Positions 35,592 through 63,705 of a DNA stretch of 64,000 nt are shown in pieces. The notes beneath the pieces are model-generated. The model was not told where the DNA came from. It made no database searches and saw only the letters and a list, made by a program, of their open reading frames with translations. The DNA is taken from the sequence record OR836606.1, one strand, 5' to 3'. Numbering within the stretch: the stretch's first letter is position 1; every line of letters begins with the position of its first letter. The position numbers and the translations under genes were made by a program.

Positions 35592-35603
35592 TAATAGTAT
35601 GTT
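35592..35603 (-). promoter_or_regulatory. Candidate phage late promoter AACA-N6-TA
   Basis: Minus strand AACATACTATTA upstream of the sheath gene. Confidence 0.4.
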
Positions 35604-43579: not shown

Positions 43580-43654
43580 TTTTTATATACTATTTTACTA
43601 AAATATCTAATACAATCTAGTTAGATTTGTTTTATAAAAATTTGCGATAATAAA

Positions 43655-43685
43655 TAGGTAATGACAAATAATATGTCATTACCTA
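43655..43685 (-). terminator. Terminator after terminase
   Basis: TAGGTAATGACA/TGTCATTACCTA stem, same sequence family as 10507-10537. Confidence 0.75.
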
Positions 43686-43693
43686 TAATATAT

Positions 43694-46600
43694 TTAATCT
43701 AATAGATTCATTATTCTTTTTGATTTCTGATCTGGAGAAGAATTGTTATTCTGTAATAAAGGATTACTAGGGAGATTACCATCAATAATTCCACTAATAC
43801 GTTTCATGGATGCAATATCTTTTCTTCTAGCTTGTCTTTCTTTTTCAATTTCTTCTGCATTATCTCCATCTGCAGATACCATTGAACCGTATTTAACTTT
43901 AACAAATTTCTTAATGTCTTTCTCATAGTAATAAGCATATAAACAAAATAGATAACTCATAAGTAAATCGTCATGTCCGCCATCAGGGTGATCAATTCTA
44001 CCTTTTTTCATTTGAAGGGATTTTATTTGTTGGAATAATGGTTTATTATTAACTAAATAAGGTTTTTCTTCAACAATCATTGATAAAATTTCATTGAGCA
44101 TTAGATCTGCTATATAAATTCATGAGTTTAATTTAATTAAAATGAATTTATTCGACTTCGTCATCACTCTGACTTACTTTGCACTTTAAGTTTTTTCGTT
44201 ATAAACTACTTCAACAGAAAGCTTTAATCAAAGCAGAGGTTAAAGCTCTTAAGTCATCGCATTTGGACATTTAGAGGAATAAGACCTCATTTAGCCTGCC
44301 CAACAAAACGCTTACCATACAGTTTTAAATTGACAGCAGCGTTATAATCTCTATCCATTTTATGTCCACAATCACAGGAATACCATCTATCTGATAGTTT
44401 CAACTTATCTTCTTTAGTTAGAATTTGGCCACAATTAGAACATAATTGAGTTGATGGAAACCATCTGTCAGCTACAATAATAGTATTACCATTGCTTTCA
44501 GCTTTTTGTTCAAGTAAAGTCCTAAACTGTCTCCAATTGGACTGTGCGATTGATTTGGATAGTTTTCTATTTTTAATCATATTTGAAACCTGTAAATCTT
44601 CAATAGTTATATATTGATAATTGTTAATCAAGTTAGTAGTAATCTTATGAAGATAATCTTTTTTAATATTATTAATTCTATACCATACTTTTTGTATTTT
44701 GGTTTTCAATACATTGTATTTATTAGAACCATAAACTTTTTTAGATAATCTTTTTTGGTAGTATTTGATTTTATTATAGAGTGAGATTAGTTTATTATTT
44801 AATGAATGGTATTTTTTAAATTTACCGAAATCATCATTAATAATAGCTAAATCTTTTACACCTAAATCAATACCTACATGACTATTGTTATGAATTAATT
44901 TTTTACTGTTATCAACTTTCATTACTATCGAAGCGAAATACCTACCAGCATATTTGGATATAGTTACTTCTTGTATAGAATTATAATCTTTGTTTAAAGG
45001 TTCTTTCATTTTAATTAATGAATTTACACCACGCAATTTAAGTTTATTATTTTTCTCACCTTTAATTTGAATAGCGTAAGGATCTTTCCTATAGAACCTT
45101 GCTCTTAATTTAGATTTCTTTTTAGATTTAAATTTAGGATATTTACCATATCCTTTCCACATCATATTAAATGCTTTACCTAGATCTTCTGTAGAAGTTT
45201 CAATTATCATGATAATTTGATCTTTCTCCCAATCTTCTTTACATTTTTTAAGTTCATCACGAACTCTACGATGAGTTGGTTTTGGTAAAGATTTATCAAT
45301 TTGATAATTATTCCACATATATTTCCATTTATTAAGTGCCTTGTTATAAATATAACGACTATATCCAAAAGCTTGATTAAATATCTCTCGTTGTTCTTTA
45401 TTAGGTTTCAATTCGATTTTTATAGATTTGTACATGTGATTTTCACCTCGATTCATATTTCTAAATGATTTAGAATTTATAATTCATTGTTTAATATATC
45501 GAGGTAAAAATTATTTTAATTAAATTAAACTCACGAATTCCAGAAATCCCTTTCAGGTTCTGTTAAATAGCAAGACTATATCATGATCCATTAAATCAAT
45601 GGACCCCTCGCACTTCGAAAAACTTCTGATGAAGTTAATCTACTCTACTCACTTCACATAGTATTTCAACTATGCTTATTCAGGTTAATCAAACCTGTGC
45701 TTTCGATAGTCGTTGAACGTTTATCCATCATGTGGACACTTCGCTGCTAGACTTCCCATTGTTTACAAACTTTAGCGATCTAGGGTTTTCACCTAGACTT
45801 GTTTTCAGCATAGTTCATCTTAGAGATTTTTTCTGTCTTTCGACTGCATGTCACGCTATCCATTACTGGCATACGTTGTAGCTCTCTAAGCTTTAGGGTT
45901 TTACAAGCAATTCACGAGGTATTTTTACCACTAATTTCATGAATTAAAATTAGTTTAATTTACTTATATAGTAGCAGAGCGTGAAACATGAATTAATAAG
46001 AATTTAAGTCTTAATTCACTTAAAATATCTTAAATTAAAACTGTTTCGTTACTCTAGATTTTTTAGTTGTATCAATACCATATCTTCTTACTTGTTTGGT
46101 AACTTTATTAGTGCTATTTCTAGGAATTTCATTAAATACTTGCTTATTAACTTCAACTTGTTTTTCTGCTACTCTATTCTTTAATGAGTAGAAAATATTG
46201 TCTCCAATACCATCAGTTTGAATCATATCTTCTATCATTACAGTACCTGCATAGTTACGTTCAGGTATTAATACTGCATTAGGTATATAAAGCGTAATAA
46301 GTTCTTTAATTAATTTTCTAAAAGTAGGTCCATTAATTACATTATTTTGGAAAATCATTACAGGCTCTAATGTACCTGGATCAACTACAGTAAATGCAGT
46401 ATTATCTCGACCAAGACCACCAGATATATCAATACCAACAAGCCAGTTCTTTTCATGCATATTATCCATCTTTTTAACCATATAAACATAATAAGTTTTA
46501 CCATTTATTTTAAAATCAATAGTATTATATATCTCTTTATTTGCATATAATGATAATTCTGACATTTGTTGTTCATCAAATAAAGAATCATCGTTACTAA

Positions 46601-48276
46601 ACGCCCATTCAAGAAGTATCTCACGTTTAACTGCTTCTAAAGAACCAATTTGACGTTTTTGCTTTTCTAACCAAGCATCATCTTTACCTAATTCTTTATA
46701 TGAATATTCTATATAGATGAATGAATTGCCTGAATTACTTTCCATATACTCTTCTAATTTTTCATTACCCTCTTCTTCAGAATTAATGTAATAATCATAT
46801 ATTTTTTCTGTCCATTGTGCTGCATCATTCATTTGCTCAAAGAAGAACTGTCCTTGAGGTACATCCAAAGTACTCATATTTTTTATCCTATATTAATTTA
46901 ATATAGATAAGACTATATCTTAGTATATTATAATACCATTTATTATTTAGTCGTTAAACAAGTATTATCAACTTGATGCTGATTGTCTTAATAAAGATTT
47001 TCCAGCAATTAAATAAATAAGCCCAGTTTAATTTTAGGCGTTGTTGTAATTAGAAGACCATAAGGTGTGCCATTTTTCTTAGCTATTGCAGATGCTGTAG
47101 AAACTGCCTTTTAATATTAATCTACATGGATTCCATATAGAATAGACTATATCTTAGTATTATATTAATACTATTTATTATTTAGTCGTTGAACACTATA
47201 AATAGCGATGCTGATCGTCTTAATAAAGATTTTCCAGCAATTAAATAAATAAGCCCGCATTAATTTCAGGCCTCATTGCTTCAAACATTGTTTGGTTGTG
47301 TGGAATGAATGCCCACTCATCCAACCAGACCATAGGTCATTATGTTAACTATATTTAAAAAATATAGATCAGACTATATCATACTCATATAAATAAGTGA
47401 ATATATTTAGTCGTTGAACACTATAATTAGTGATGCTGATTAAGATAATAATCTATTCCAGCAATTAATATTCTTTTACTACTGCAACTATCTACAGTAG
47501 AACCACGCTATTTTAGACTATATCTTCAATTTTATAATTGTCTTTTATTTAGTCGTTGAACACATATGTGATGCTGATCAAATTAAATAATTTGTCCCAG
47601 CAATTAAAAAGATTTATAGCAAGCCATGATATTAACCTGCTTTATTTGCACTCTCACTGTTAGTCGGAGGTGAAACTGTTTTAATAGTATTGTTATTACT
47701 AGCTAATTGAAATTCGTTGATCTTATCTCTATCATTTTTATCTCCAAAATTAGCTAATACATATTCAGGTAAACATTTCTCTTTAAATAAGTTTTTAAGA
47801 CGTTTTAAGTTCTCAGTTGTATCTGAATAAGATTTGTGTGTAAATAACATTGTATAGTTACTACCTACTAATAACATTATCCATGAATAATAACATACTG
47901 CTGAATATGTTTTATAGTGCTGACGTGGAAGCATTATAGCTGTATCTAAATTGTGTAACATACAAAATGTCATCGCCATATTACCTCTATGAAGTTCATA
48001 CATAACCTTACCGCCAGGAACAGGAACTCTTATAACTTCCCTTAAATAAAACCATATATTAATTTTAGCTTCCCTTAATACACGGGTTTTCATTTCATCA
48101 GAAAGTTCAGGATCCCAAGGATCTACTCCTACAAGATTTTTATCATATAGAGTTAATGGAATCCCATAATTTCTGACGTTGTTCTTCTTAAGATCCCTAG
48201 CCACTCTTAAAAAACTAACATTATTAGTTTTATAATCGTAATAAACTTTTTTCTTTAATTTTGGTTTAATTGTCAT
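43694..48276 (-). CDS. terL: Terminase large subunit, spliced from six exons (48276-47635, 47507-47494, 47337-47268, 47107-47036, 46874-46052, 44106-43694; ~677 aa)
   Basis: Walker A-like PRQHYKT; spliced product restores GRGSTVPMVWLDEWAF (Walker B), LLITTTP-STLD, nuclease VGIDISGG and GGHDDLLMS; exon sum 2034 nt is a multiple of 3. Last junction is the least certain. Confidence 0.88.
44287..45435 (-). CDS. tnpB: TnpB RNA-guided endonuclease (IS200/IS605/IS607 OrfB family)
   Basis: N-terminal HTH (KIELKPNKEQ..FGYSRYIYN), RuvC GIDLG / TIEDL / DRDYNAAVNL, Zn finger CSNC..CDC; likely start ATG 45435 after GAGGTG (track start 45456). Confidence 0.93.
   Translation of the reverse strand: MYKSIKIELKPNKEQREIFNQAFGYSRYIYNKALNKWKYMWNNYQIDKSLPKPTHRRVRDELKKCKEDWEKDQIIMIIETSTEDLGKAFNMMWKGYGKYPKFKSKKKSKLRARFYRKDPYAIQIKGEKNNKLKLRGVNSLIKMKEPLNKDYNSIQEVTISKYAGRYFASIVMKVDNSKKLIHNNSHVGIDLGVKDLAIINDDFGKFKKYHSLNNKLISLYNKIKYYQKRLSKKVYGSNKYNVLKTKIQKVWYRINNIKKDYLHKITTNLINNYQYITIEDLQVSNMIKNRKLSKSIAQSNWRQFRTLLEQKAESNGNTIIVADRWFPSTQLCSNCGQILTKEDKLKLSDRWYSCDCGHKMDRDYNAAVNLKLYGKRFVGQAK
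45480..45491 (-). promoter_or_regulatory. Candidate late promoter for tnpB inside an RBS-sequestering hairpin
   Basis: Minus strand AACAATGAATTA lies between hairpin arms 45498-45509 and 45441-45452; the 3' arm contains the GAGGUG SD. Confidence 0.6.
46875..47035 (-). ncRNA. Miniature group I intron T4 in terminase (161 nt)
   Basis: P1 GCCU/GGGC; P AAUUGCUGGAAA, Q AAUCAGCAUC, R GUUUAACGACUAAA, S AAGAUAUAGUCU; ends AUG; restores TTTP-STLD. Confidence 0.85.
47108..47267 (-). ncRNA. Miniature group I intron T3 in terminase (160 nt)
   Basis: P1 AGGCCU/GGGCUU; full P/Q/R/S set; terminal G; restores EAMRP-AVSTA. Confidence 0.88.
47338..47493 (-). ncRNA. Miniature group I intron T2 in terminase (156 nt)
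   Basis: P1 CUACUGU/GCAGUAG; P/Q/R/S; phase-2 junction GT|A restores GSTVPMVWLDE. Confidence 0.9.
47508..47634 (-). ncRNA. Miniature group I intron T1 in terminase (127 nt, no P9)
   Basis: P1 GCAGGU/GGCUUGC; P3 UCUUUU/AAAAGA; P4; R GUUCAACGACUAAA; S AAGAUAUAGUCU followed only by AAAAUAG; restores KAG-RG. Confidence 0.88.
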
Positions 48277-48295
48277 ATTTATTTCAACTCACTTT

Positions 48296-49459
48296 CTATA
48301 CATTTAATCTATCTGATTTTTTAATTAATGTTTGAATATCAGAAAGTTGTTGTTTTAATTCATTTTTAACTTCTTTATCATTATTAGGGTTACTTATTTC
48401 AAATTTTAATGTTTTAATAATAGCTTCAATTGAATCCGTTGGATAGTCTCTATAGTCTCTAATAAACAATCTACTTGGATATAATAATTTCCTAACAATT
48501 TTACCTAATAAAGTTTTACCTTTTTTATTTTCAGATTTAGTTCTAAATGATTTGTATATGATATCATAAAAATTTATAATTTCAGTAGAATAACCGTATA
48601 ACGTAGGTAACTGATTAGCCGATCTTTCTGAAAGGTTGTAGTTCATTTTACCCACTCTTTCATTATCTAAAAGATTTAAAGTTACATTAGCTATAAAAGA
48701 ACTGCCTAACACCAGTGGTAATACTCCTGTCAATGAAGTTAATCCAGCAACTAAAACTGTCATAGCTATAATCATAGGACCTGCGAATTTTAAATTTCTA
48801 GTTGTATCAGATTCAATGTCCTTAGTATACTGAAATTGAACTGGCTTGTTATCTTTATATTTTAATTCAAAAGCGGGTTCTTTTCCTTGGCTTAATACTT
48901 TAATTTCGATAGGTAAAAATAGATTATGTCCCATTTCATGCAATAATAATGCAGTACACATTCTTTCATTAAAATTACTAAAAGTCACTTCTTTAGAAGA
49001 TTTTTTCTTTTCTAAAAAGTATCTTATTGAAGATAACTCAATAAATACCTCAATTTCCCTAGGTTTAGCGTAATGTATACCATTTTTCTCTTCCATAACT
49101 ATTTTTGTTATGCCATCAATAGTATCTCTTATTTGTTCTGGCTTAATTAAAGTATAAGCCACTGATCTTACTCTAAATTTATCTTTACCTTTAGGATCAG
49201 CTTCAACAAATTTTAATTGCATATTAGCATTAAATAATTTTTTAGTAATTTTAGAAATATTATTAGCTATTTTATTTATTTCATGTTTATCAATTAAATC
49301 AAATTCAGATTTATCGAAATTATAGCTATCTAATAAAGTTTTAAATTCTTCATCTATTTCTCTAAGTAATGAAGTATTTTTACTGAAATTAAAAGCATCT
49401 TCATTAATATTCATTATTTTATTAATTTTATTCAATTGGCATTCTTTTCGTAAATCCAT
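48296..49459 (-). CDS. HEXXH metallopeptidase-like protein, paralog 1 (probable virion/head protein)
   Basis: LLHEMGH, hydrophobic hairpin, ERSANQLPTLYGY; located between terminase and capsid genes. Confidence 0.65.
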   Translation of the reverse strand: MDLRKECQLNKINKIMNINEDAFNFSKNTSLLREIDEEFKTLLDSYNFDKSEFDLIDKHEINKIANNISKITKKLFNANMQLKFVEADPKGKDKFRVRSVAYTLIKPEQIRDTIDGITKIVMEEKNGIHYAKPREIEVFIELSSIRYFLEKKKSSKEVTFSNFNERMCTALLLHEMGHNLFLPIEIKVLSQGKEPAFELKYKDNKPVQFQYTKDIESDTTRNLKFAGPMIIAMTVLVAGLTSLTGVLPLVLGSSFIANVTLNLLDNERVGKMNYNLSERSANQLPTLYGYSTEIINFYDIIYKSFRTKSENKKGKTLLGKIVRKLLYPSRLFIRDYRDYPTDSIEAIIKTLKFEISNPNNDKEVKNELKQQLSDIQTLIKKSDRLNV

Positions 49460-52354: not shown

Positions 52355-52366
52355 TATAAATTTGTT
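52355..52366 (-). promoter_or_regulatory. Candidate late promoter for major capsid gene
   Basis: Minus strand AACAAATTTATA. Confidence 0.5.
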
Positions 52367-62080: not shown

Positions 62081-62170
62081 TTTTTAATAAATATATTTTT
62101 AATTAATAAATTTTTAATAAATATATTTTTAATTAATAAATTTTTAATAAATATATTTTTAATTAATAAA
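62081..62170 (+). repeat. Three perfect tandem copies of a 30-bp A/T-only unit
   Basis: TTTTTAATAAATATATTTTTAATTAATAAA x3, preceded by GGGGGATTAGGGGG. Confidence 0.95.
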
Positions 62171-62176
62171 AAGGAT

Positions 62177-62821
62177 TTGATAAATAAAATGAATAATATA
62201 GATATAAAATACAAAAGTGATAATATTAATAATAAAGTTAAATTAAATAGAAATAATAGAATCAATAATATATTAATTAAAAAAGATTCAAATAATAATA
62301 CAACATTAGTAAATAAAAAAAGTAAATTTCAAATATCAAGTTTATACTTTGAAATAGAATCAGAAAATAGTTTAAAGAAATTTATTAAGAATGTAGAAGG
62401 ATTGGTAAGAAGATCAAATGAATATAAAAAGTATTTATCAATATTAAAAGAAGAATATAATTTAAAAAATGATATAACAATGTCAAATTTATCGGATGAT
62501 ATGGTTACAATGGAATATCATCACTTTCCTTTTACATTATATGAAATTGTAGAAATAGTAGTTAATAGAGCTATTATGGAAGACGAACAATTCACATCAA
62601 TAGATATAGCAGAAAGAGTTATGAAATTACATTTCGATAATAAAGTAGGCTTAGTATTATTATCCAAAACAAATCATCAATTAGCTCATGCAGGTAAAAT
62701 TATCATTCCACTATCTTCAATATTTGGTAAAGTAAATGAATTTGTTTCGTATTATAAAGACTATATGTTAGATCATCAAATAGAACAGTATAATGAATTA
62801 TTAGACGCTTCAAATATATAA
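62177..62821 (+). CDS. Hypothetical protein with HNH-like histidine motifs
   Basis: MEYHHFPFTL...LSKTNHQLAH; SD AAGGA, TTG start. Confidence 0.65.
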   Translation: MINKMNNIDIKYKSDNINNKVKLNRNNRINNILIKKDSNNNTTLVNKKSKFQISSLYFEIESENSLKKFIKNVEGLVRRSNEYKKYLSILKEEYNLKNDITMSNLSDDMVTMEYHHFPFTLYEIVEIVVNRAIMEDEQFTSIDIAERVMKLHFDNKVGLVLLSKTNHQLAHAGKIIIPLSSIFGKVNEFVSYYKDYMLDHQIEQYNELLDASNI

Positions 62822-62901
62822 TAAAATTATAAACATTATTTAAATATATATTATATAAATGAGATTAATAATAGTTAAATAATCTTAAATAATTTTTATA
62901 A

Positions 62902-63705
62902 ATGGAGATGAAATGGATAATGGAAGAATTAAACCAAGCAATTGAATTATTTAATAATGACTTAGAAAGAATTAATGAAGATATTTCAAATGTATTAATG
63001 AAAGAGATGAAAGAAGAATCTAATAGAAAAGAATTAGAAATCTTAGAAGAACGATTAGGTTCAACTGGAGATAGTAAAACATTTAGAGATTTTTATAGTA
63101 TGAAAATGATTAGAAGAAAATCAGATAATATTACTGGTTTGTCATATTCTGATTTTATTAAATTCTTTACTGATGAAAATGAATTAAACAGTGAAGAAAA
63201 TTTTGCAAGAAATATTATGGATTTCTTATCTATGTCTAGAAGTGTAAATATTAGTGAATTTCTTCCAGAAGGACAAAGTAATATTAGTGAAAGAGTATTT
63301 GCATTAATGTTAAGTTATACCGATGAAAATATGGGAACTAATTTAAACTTTCAAGAAATATATAATATAATTTTAGTGACTTATATTGATTTATTTGTAT
63401 ACTATAATAAATCAGATTTAATTAAAGGTAATGATATCACTAAAAAAGATAATAAAATTATTAAGAATTTTTCAGATTCAATTATTAATGAATTTTTAAA
63501 TGAATCTATTAAAGCCATGCAAGCTAGTGAAGCTATTAAAATTAATTCAAGAAAAATTCCTAAGAATATTAATCCGATAGAAATGATATCTTTAGAACAA
63601 ATAGGCAAAATTAAAGCTGAAGAAGCTGAAGGAACTTCTAAAGAATTAAATGCTAATATGCTTTTAGTAAAAACTATTCTTGAATATAGAGCTAATGTAA
63701 AATAA
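62902..63705 (+). CDS. Hypothetical protein (267 aa)
   Basis: Long ORF, helical composition. Confidence 0.75.
   Translation: MEMKWIMEELNQAIELFNNDLERINEDISNVLMKEMKEESNRKELEILEERLGSTGDSKTFRDFYSMKMIRRKSDNITGLSYSDFIKFFTDENELNSEENFARNIMDFLSMSRSVNISEFLPEGQSNISERVFALMLSYTDENMGTNLNFQEIYNIILVTYIDLFVYYNKSDLIKGNDITKKDNKIIKNFSDSIINEFLNESIKAMQASEAIKINSRKIPKNINPIEMISLEQIGKIKAEEAEGTSKELNANMLLVKTILEYRANVK

Follow-up and report, generated by a model that had tools for sequence, protein, structure and literature searches.

A 64,000-nucleotide stretch of the genome of Staphylococcus jumbo phage LY01 (OR836606.1, positions 186001-250000; hereafter the window, in which position 45480 corresponds to LY01 231480) carries on its minus strand a tnpB gene whose leader can fold over its own ribosome-binding site (RBS), with a promoter-like motif in the loop of the fold. 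The locus raises the question of why a transposon nuclease gene should begin in this way, and whether, as an earlier note on this DNA proposed from the letters alone, it is wired like the intron endonucleases of phage T4 and has been domesticated into the late programme of the phage. LY01 is related to S6 and MarsHill, AR9/PBS1-like jumbo phages with virion and non-virion RNA polymerases (RNAP; the non-virion enzyme is nvRNAP below), and the G+C content of the window is 26%. Our analysis indicates that the hairpin at 45511-45439 is probably a translational gate with an internal phage promoter, situated in an IStron within the terL gene.

Hairpin at the start of tnpB

The gene and the elements of its leader are placed as follows.

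44287..45435, minus strand: tnpB, 382 aa (NCBIfam guided_TnpB, 236 bits, cut-off 100)
45443..45448, minus strand: Shine-Dalgarno (SD) sequence GAGGUG of tnpB, 7 nt 5' of AUG 45435 and buried in the stem
45439..45511, minus strand: hairpin predicted to sequester the SD, defined by fold, shuffle test, SD-pairing rank, and the same layout in eight other elements

The two arms noticed earlier, UUUUACCUCGAU (45509-45498) and AUCGAGGUGAAA (45452-45441), were found on the minus strand as described and form 12 bp with one G-U pair. In a 91-nt fold (45425-45515, minus strand), the full stem 45511-45439 was the single dominant hairpin at -20.2 kcal/mol, and it was retained in a 121-nt folding context. 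Dinucleotide shuffles averaged -8.6 kcal/mol and none of 200 was as stable, which corresponded to a z of -4.9. The predicted pairing probability of the SD was 0.99, ranking first among the leaders of 47 window genes (the next was 0.82), in agreement with the claim that the stem hides GAGGUG. When the leader was folded from 45480, the SD was free and the structure reached -5.1 kcal/mol (z = -0.3). The start codon, AUG 45435, opens the sequence MYKSIKIEL, and the identical start was found in the paralogues. The hairpin was also considered as an intrinsic terminator or a σ70 promoter; both were rejected, since the leader contained no such promoter or terminator and no U-tract.

Conservation of the module in paralogues and relatives

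The comparison set consisted of nine diverged elements: copy A, the terL IStron of the window; copy B, in a DNA polymerase gene of LY01; an element of Listeria phage LPJP1; and L010, L011, L018, L019, L023, and L024 from uncultured jumbo phages. Three further, more distant tnpB-like places in LY01 were left out. TnpB identity across the compared elements was 42-86%, the TnpB of copy B being 86% identical; this copy (L008:32830-34745; LY01 182830-184745) splits the gene for the DNA polymerase I catalytic subunit. The arms, loop motif, folding energy, and z of each leader were as follows.

LY01-A: arms UUUUACCUCGAU and AUCGAGGUGAAA; AACA-N6-TAT; -20.2 kcal/mol; z -4.9
LY01-B: early TATATATTAT-N6-G inside the hairpin; -16.4 kcal/mol; z -3.3
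LPJP1, before tnpA (first open reading frame, ORF): arms CACUCUUUUU and AAAAAGGAGUG; AACA-AUAUAA-UAU; -18.5 kcal/mol; z -2.7
L010: arms AUUACCUCC and GGAGGUAAU; AACA-UAAAUU-UAU; -21.1 kcal/mol; z -4.7
L018: arms as in L010; AACA-N7-TA; -19.0 kcal/mol; z -3.0
L011 (intergenic, no ribozyme): arms UUUCACCUCU and GGGGUGAAA; AACA-UCUAUU-UAU; -24.2 kcal/mol; z -4.8
L019: arms CACC.ACUUUUU and AAAGGU.GGUG; AACA-UAAAAU-UAU; -20.4 kcal/mol; z -4.8
L023: arms ACCUCUU and AGGAGGU; AACA-UUAUAG-UAU; -18.3 kcal/mol; z -3.8
L024 (next to a Cpn60 exon): arms UCACCUCUC and GGAAGGGGUGA; AACA-UAUGAA-UAU; -17.2 kcal/mol; z -2.5

The order of anti-SD arm, phage promoter consensus, SD arm, and start codon was found in every retrievable member of the cassette lineage, that is, in all nine elements, and each time the consensus (late-type in eight, early-type in one) was placed so that the predicted transcript omits the anti-SD arm. 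The arms covary, their sequences differing among elements with the pairing kept (z from -2.5 to -4.9), and several stems include G-U pairs that are valid only in sense RNA. Leaders beginning at the predicted starts folded at 0 to -5 kcal/mol. A layout conserved with covarying arms in nine elements matches the published T4 scheme (PMC2988022); the analogy drawn in the earlier note was hence strengthened, and T4-like wiring appears strongly supported by the comparative evidence.

In copy C (L006:12150-13640; LY01 62150-63640) and in a distant tnpB of Machias (L029:590-710), the early consensus AAATATATATTAT-N6-G is perfect and a stable, self-contained hairpin begins at +1; neither has an upstream anti-SD arm. 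The gate as a general property of all tnpB genes of these phages was ruled out on these two cases.

The loop motif as a probable late promoter

The motif in the loop was located as follows.

45480..45491, minus strand: late-promoter-type motif AACA-AUGAAU-UA (AR9 consensus), predicted start A45480, 3' of the upstream arm

The late promoter of AR9, determined by differential RNA sequencing (dRNA-seq) and primer extension, is AACA-(6N)-T-A/G, in which the last base is the start site (PMC5312081). The loop consists of AACA (45491-45488), ATGAAT, and TA (45481-45480), followed by T, so that the motif singled out in the earlier note matches this consensus exactly. The bare pattern AACA-N6-T[AG] occurred 79 times in the window, about half of the expectation from composition, and is weak evidence alone. 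The longer form AACA-N6-TAT occurred 15 times on both strands, and seven of these were in sense orientation no more than 150 nt before a gene start, where 3.4% of positions fall. It was compared with 19 composition-matched control patterns (tetramer permutations and spacings N4-N8): only five occurrences fell in coding sequence, compared with 7-34 for the controls, which in turn occurred 0-4 times upstream of genes. In the window, AACA-N6-TAT behaves like a selected signal, and its depletion in coding sequence suggests selection against spurious late promoters.

The same motif had been said to precede the capsid, sheath, and protease genes. We located it before the major head gene (phrog_20655), with a predicted start at 52355, 64 nt upstream, and before the tail sheath gene (phrog_19666), with a predicted start at 35592, 79 nt upstream; the protease gene could not be confirmed. 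In the published analysis of MarsHill, a late motif was not identifiable de novo. Across the comparison set, AACA-N6-TAT was kept in seven of the nine loops, the exceptions being L018 with N7 and the early-type copy B. It stood at shifting loop positions amid diverged sequence, and the leaders were too diverged for MAFFT to bring the AACA motifs into register.

If the hairpin were real and the AACA motif no promoter, TnpB would be made only if another process, such as RNA processing, intron excision and refolding, or the arrival of ribosomes from upstream, opened the hairpin. The motif is short, its start site is only predicted, and an excised intron RNA would still hold tnpB and could refold. 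However, retention of AACA-N6-TAT in diverged loops at shifting positions, its behavior as a selected signal in the window, and the presence of the other phage promoter class at the equivalent place in copy B make this explanation unlikely.

We give slightly less credit to an action of the inverted repeat in DNA, whereby extrusion or easier melting would put the promoter in a single strand for nvRNAP and SD occlusion would be incidental. AR9 nvRNAP recognises the template strand of promoters containing deoxyuridine (dU) (PMC5449584 and PMC9209446), and eight elements have a late-type motif flanked by the arms. The remaining strong late-type sites of the window (capsid 52355 and 52409, sheath 35592, 36644, and 61677), however, had only 0-3 enclosing pairs and weak folds, and a DNA cruciform as a general promoter feature was rejected on this ground. 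Moreover, the SD of the first ORF forms the 3' arm in every element, the G-U pairs mentioned above would serve in sense RNA only, and copy B keeps the hairpin with an early promoter, the type used by the virion RNAP.

As a separate observation, the window sequence ATATATTA-AACAATGAAT-TA resembles a degenerate form of the copy C early promoter that has acquired the late spacing.

Anatomy of the insertion in terL

The TerL protein of S6 is uninterrupted (677 aa), whereas a tblastn search with it recovered the LY01 homologue in pieces. MarsHill-like phages encode both RNAP sets, many of their genes have been reported as intron-split, and the MarsHill authors were unable to reconstruct TerL. The terL features around the insert were as follows.

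47635..48276, minus strand: terL exon 1 (S6 TerL residues 1-214), tblastn with S6 TerL, 99% identity
46053..46874, minus strand: terL exon directly 5' of the IStron (S6 residues 267-540), ending ...AAAUCUAGAG, by S6 comparison
46051..46054, minus strand: left junction and predicted 5' splice site, with the AG core at 46053-46052, G46052 as the last exon base, and U46051 as the first intron base
45975..45980, minus strand: candidate internal guide sequence GCUCUG, read from the sequence, forming P1 with exon UAGAG plus U+1
43694..44106, minus strand: last terL exon (S6 residues 541-677), beginning AUCUAAUG, by S6 comparison

The insert that carries tnpB measures 1,945 bp and lies exactly between TerL R540 and D541. 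Judged by its sequence features, it is an IStron of group B (IS607-type), ~1.95 kb long and without tnpA, and it interrupts terL. The T4 analogy is consequently more literal than the earlier note knew, because tnpB truly lies inside a group I intron.

With junctions marked by slashes, the boundaries of the insert read ...AAATCTAGAG / TAACG...TATAGCAG / ATCTAATG... The empty terL site of MarsHill is AAATCTCGTGATCTAATG, and S6 and MarsHill together give AAATCTCGTGA(C/T)(T/C)TAATG. Only with G at -1 did the junction stay in frame and scarless and the intron also end in G. The canonical U at -1 of the 5' splice site was tried, and all such alternatives led to a frameshift, a 2-aa deletion, or a 5-aa insertion; it was dropped because copy B likewise has G at -1 and the literature on group B IStrons confirms this base (PMC13565253). 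In copy B, the empty MarsHill site AGTGGTG / TTGATATT corresponds to the occupied LY01 site AGTGGAG / ...GCAG / TTGATATT, and therefore the rule of copy A, AG at both junctions and G at -1, holds there as well. The guide covaries with the exon: AGAG in terL faces CUCU in copy A (...UAGAG / U... with guide GCUCUG), and GGAG in the polymerase gene faces CUCC in copy B (...UGGAG / A...), with AG at both junctions of each.

The predicted spliced junctions would be UCUAGAG / AUCUAAUG in terL and GUGGAG / UUGAUAUU in the polymerase copy. Self-splicing that restores the host ORF would be expected, since terL and the DNA polymerase gene are essential, the phage is viable, and the junctions in both genes are scarless and keep the reading frame.

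At -2, both occupied sites have A in place of the T found in the empty sites of MarsHill and S6, a synonymous difference (CGTG to AGAG at 46053-46055, and GGTG to GGAG at L008 ~34741). It would fit a core dinucleotide that the donor contributes to the left junction, which has been reported for CboTnpA(S), or a difference in the transposon-associated motif (TAM) that protects occupied alleles.

Upstream of the IStron, terL is split further (46875-47634, minus strand), S6 residues ~220-250 being found at 47336-47244 and residues ~243-266 at 47107-47036. The intervening stretches measure ~300, 135, and 160 nt. As group I introns, the second and third would be very short, although P-like AAUUGCUGG strings occur near 47590 and 47005.

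Ribozyme, inverted repeat, and 3' end of the IStron

On the minus strand, the IStron consists in order of a group I ribozyme (46051-45541), a 33-nt long-range stem, tnpB (45435-44287), and an ωRNA-like end at the 3' splice site (44107). Its parts were assigned as follows.

45571..45919, minus strand: group I ribozyme core, with P3 CCUCG 45919-45915 and CGAGG 45610-45606, P4 UUGCU 45910-45906 and AGCAG, and P8
45750-45742 (Q), 45718-45707 (R, GUUCAACGACUA), and 45584-45574 (S, AUGAUAUAGUC), minus strand: group I ribozyme strings
45541..45562, minus strand: P9-like hairpin CAGAACCUGAAAGGGAUUUCUG, whose stem covaries across six elements
45508..45539, minus strand: 5' arm of the 33-nt long-range inverted repeat (IR) stem, found by self-BLAST, 31/33 complementary to 44149-44117
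44117..44149, minus strand: 3' arm of the IR stem, with a local hairpin as the alternative fold
44107..44300, minus strand: ωRNA-like 3' segment ending in invariant ...GCAG, by nine-element alignment

The first 500 nt of the insert contain the group I strings P GAAUUGCUUG, Q CUAGCAGCG, R GUUCAACGACUA, and S AUGAUAUAGUC. Rfam gave no group I or ωRNA family in the whole window at gathering thresholds, in 43600-48300 at E<=10, or in four relatives at E<=1, and covariation was therefore used as evidence for both RNAs. In a six-sequence alignment with relatives, the ribozyme fold had 56 consensus pairs, 24 of them with compensatory changes, which include P7 with its bulge, P8, and the P9-like hairpin; P4 could also be placed. 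P3 varied among C-G, U-G, and U-A across the relatives, and the P9-like stem appeared as CAG/CUG, CUGAU/AUCAG, CCAAU/AUUGG, CCGAU/AUCGG, and UUGAU/AUCAA.

The IR stem, with a duplex energy of -29.3 kcal/mol, brackets the tnpB cargo, and L010 has a different complementary pair in its place (GAGAAUUUAAUC and GAUUAAAUUCUC). TnpB aligned end to end (residues 2-371) with PDB 8iaz (1.7e-49) and ISDra2 TnpB 8exa (8e-41); its RuvC motifs GIDLG, IEDL, and DRDYNAA are intact, and it has a CxxC...CxC zinc finger. The ωRNA-like 3' segment of ~190 nt showed 22 consensus pairs, 13 compensatory, in the nine-element alignment. A long-range GACUU/AAGUC pairing in it covaries with AACUC/GAGUU and resembles the nexus pseudoknot of ωRNA. 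All nine elements end in CAG, and homology stops exactly after it. By the IS605/IS607 rule, the guide of the ωRNA would be the first ~16-20 nt of the last terL exon. The IStron 3' end (...TATATAGCAG) is retained in copy C, which has no ribozyme core upstream. The LY01 copies lack tnpA; the homologous LPJP1 element, next to groL, retains one encoding a 209-aa serine recombinase (phrog_6620, 1e-50).

With this anatomy, the hairpin could also be regarded as an architectural component of the left transposon end or of the intron periphery, such as a TnpA(S) binding motif or an extension of P9 stacked on the IR stem, whose overlap with the SD would have no regulatory role. It does directly abut the IR stem (45508/45509), short inverted motifs are known at IS607 ends (bioRxiv 2023.11.20.567912), and group B IStrons contain AT-rich inverted repeats (PMC4227781). 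Nevertheless, the module stands before tnpA in LPJP1 and before tnpB elsewhere, and therefore follows the SD of the first ORF rather than a fixed end position. L011 has the module and no ribozyme, and the 5' arm has anti-SD sequence in every case, with covariation in the pairs beside it; we accordingly consider a purely structural hairpin improbable, to about the same degree as an action in DNA. Chance, to which an AT-rich window and a low-information motif with 79 bare occurrences might seem to lend themselves, is very improbable given that 0/200 shuffles were as stable, that the leader ranked 1/47, that the module with covarying arms recurs in nine elements whose leaders are diverged and not recent copies (TnpB identity 42-86%), and that AACA-N6-TAT is expected in a ~33-position loop in only ~1% of cases from the control counts.

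Near-palindromic strings of the type AATTCATG or CATGAATT were seen five times in the IStron (45932-45944, 45987-45994, 44114-44126, 44136-44150, and 45478-45489), that is, in the P1-P2 region, in both IR arms, and over the loop promoter motif. The promoter region (AAACAATGAATTATA) also looks similar to the right end (AAACTCATGAATTTATA), much as the I-TevI operator resembles its homing site, but this likeness may be an effect of AT-richness.

Proposed mechanism and points against it

What was observed, namely conserved and covarying structures, the statistics of the motif, and the anatomy of the insertion, is consistent with a scheme of two transcripts, in which promoter activity, translational occlusion, splicing, and TnpB activity are predicted from the sequence. 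The terL read-through pre-mRNA would contain the ribozyme, both IR arms, and the anti-SD arm, and its upstream arm would pair with the tnpB SD; tnpB would be silent on this RNA, and intron folding and splicing would be possible. The phage nvRNAP would also start at the loop AACA-N6-TA promoter, at about A45480. The resulting transcript would be devoid of the anti-SD arm, the ribozyme, and the 5' IR arm; since the anti-SD arm is missing, the RBS would be open. The region of the 3' IR arm could then adopt the local hairpin of the consensus fold as part of an ωRNA with an exon-derived guide, and this transcript would be dedicated to TnpB-ωRNA production.

We propose more tentatively that the module resolves the conflict between IStron splicing and guide-RNA formation by means of two transcripts. 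In virulent jumbo phages, TnpB may in this way play the part of an intron homing endonuclease and convert the empty terL and polymerase alleles of co-infecting relatives such as S6 or MarsHill; this wider reading is conceivable and somewhat harder to accept than the gate itself.

Several points weigh against a gate of this kind, or against parts of it. Copy B has the early consensus TATATATTAT-N6-G within its SD-masking hairpin, and in copy C, a free-standing tnpB, the promoter is also early and the SD is not robustly occluded, so that the control cannot be called specifically late. In L011 the module is present although the ribozyme is missing, and the gate can accordingly occur apart from an intron. 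The terL gene is presumably late too, and thus the control would separate transcripts rather than infection times, unlike that of T4 td. The tnpB stop lies ~140 nt before the 3' IR arm, and ribosomes would therefore not directly unwind the stem; the rationale of protecting splicing is borrowed from T4. The motif AACA-N6-TA is short, and the spacing in L018 is N7. The Rfam model RF00028 did not match the LY01 ribozyme even at E<=10; this negative is of little weight because no group I match was obtained anywhere in the window despite the intron-split genes reported for MarsHill-like relatives. S6, a relative of LY01, has dU-containing DNA. The presence of dU in LY01 DNA and an AR9-like nvRNAP specificity are presumed from relatives.

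The suggestion that TnpB has been domesticated into the late programme of the phage found no support. The ribozyme, the ωRNA-like 3' end, the intact RuvC motifs, the several copies, and the empty sites in sister phages are hallmarks of a selfish IStron and leave domestication unsupported, as do the early-type promoter of copy B and the early promoter of copy C without robust occlusion. The element resembles a selfish IStron that is, or recently was, active and that has adapted its expression signals to the polymerases of its host phage, the paralogues using either promoter class.

Related elements and a second intron-like core

Uncultured jumbo-phage-sized contigs of 235-255 kb from the ENA and Logan metagenomes (L011-L016, L019-L021, and L023-L028) form a large clade with several cassettes per contig, encoding ~60%-identical TnpB with or without a ribozyme. 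One of these cassettes lies in a Cpn60/groL gene, like that of Listeria phage LPJP1. Exact strings of the intron core gave no match in viral or genome contig collections, and a profile search of the viral contig collection with the TnpB alignment found no related loci.

In the gyrB region of LY01 (L006:14230-14300), a compact ORF-less group I-like core, AAUUGCUGG ... GUUCAACGACUA ... AAGAUAUAGUC, lies just 5' of the last gyrB exon, and a separate 609-bp ORF is present in the gap preceding it. This core is likely another LY01 intron that Rfam would miss.

Comparison with known systems

A transposon gene silenced by an SD-sequestering stem is known from IS200, in which a stem-loop in the 5' untranslated region of tnpA occludes the RBS. 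It resembles the LY01 arrangement in this respect and differs in the gene (tnpA) and the host, and it is not known to involve a promoter in the loop or an intron.

In the T4 scheme, a stable hairpin sequesters the RBS on long read-through transcripts and a phage promoter just upstream of the ORF gives transcripts without the inhibitory arm, as published for I-TevI, I-TevII, I-TevIII, segB, and Aeh1 mobE; deletion of the I-TevI hairpin impairs td splicing (PMC2988022). The counterparts in LY01 are the predicted RBS-masking hairpin, a candidate phage promoter whose transcripts would omit the inhibitory arm, and a mobile-element nuclease ORF in a group I intron of an essential gene. The LY01 cargo is, however, an RNA-guided TnpB with its ωRNA, whereas T4 has protein-only GIY-YIG or HNH enzymes, and the putative LY01 promoter is of the AACA-N6-TA type of a multisubunit nvRNAP, in contrast to the gp55 late promoter of T4. 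The LY01 host gene is probably late as well, so that separation would be by transcript and not by time, and one paralogue has an early promoter. Evidence for an operator or autorepression was not found for the LY01 gate, unlike in T4. Within the phage group of LY01, AR9 g190 is an intron ORF with its own promoter inside the late gene g189; that promoter is early, and the consulted part of the AR9 report describes no hairpin for g190 (PMC5312081).

The named group B IStrons are BcISt1, CbISt3/4 (in Clostridium botulinum phages c-st and D-1873), CboIStron, and CseIStron. LY01 has in common with them a group I ribozyme of the IA2-like type at the 5' end, the IR stem, tnpB, and an ωRNA-like segment that overlaps the predicted 3' splice site, as well as a last exon base G paired to C, the core dinucleotide at both junctions, and the frequent loss of tnpA with tnpB kept. 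The pairing of the exon-end G with C, a hallmark of the group, has been confirmed in vivo (PMC13565253), the core dinucleotide occurs at both ends (bioRxiv 2023.11.20.567912), and an IR stem has been drawn (PMC4227781), of which the LY01 33-nt repeat is the counterpart. Differences are that the core is AG and the 3' end CAG in the LY01 type, a variant of the rule seen in the published elements (GG and CGG); that the hosts are virulent AR9-like jumbo phages with inserts in terL, DNA polymerase, and groL; that the ribozyme is undetected by the Rfam model; and that a candidate phage-specific promoter lies internally, inside an anti-SD hairpin. The hairpin and promoter layout, known from T4 homing endonucleases, was not found described for TnpB or IStrons in the published IStron work consulted, which mentions neither an internal promoter nor occlusion of the RBS.

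These comparisons bear on how an IStron manages a sequence under three overlapping demands, namely transposition, splicing, and guide-RNA formation. In the IStron literature, the splicing and guide-RNA fates are mutually exclusive on a single transcript, and one study states that tnpA and tnpB are natively under a single promoter. A conserved internal promoter would add a transcript-level solution to this view of RNA fates competing within one transcript. The LY01 element would extend IStrons to virulent dU-DNA jumbo phages with split terL, DNA polymerase, and groL genes, and would explain the difficulty of reconstructing TerL in MarsHill-like phages. It also offers about nine natural examples of candidate nvRNAP promoters outside AR9, and compact TnpB-ωRNA systems with a putatively defined native expression logic. 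If the proposed gate is true, the same arrangement would have evolved convergently on the protein-only homing endonucleases of T4 and on the RNA-guided TnpB of these phages.

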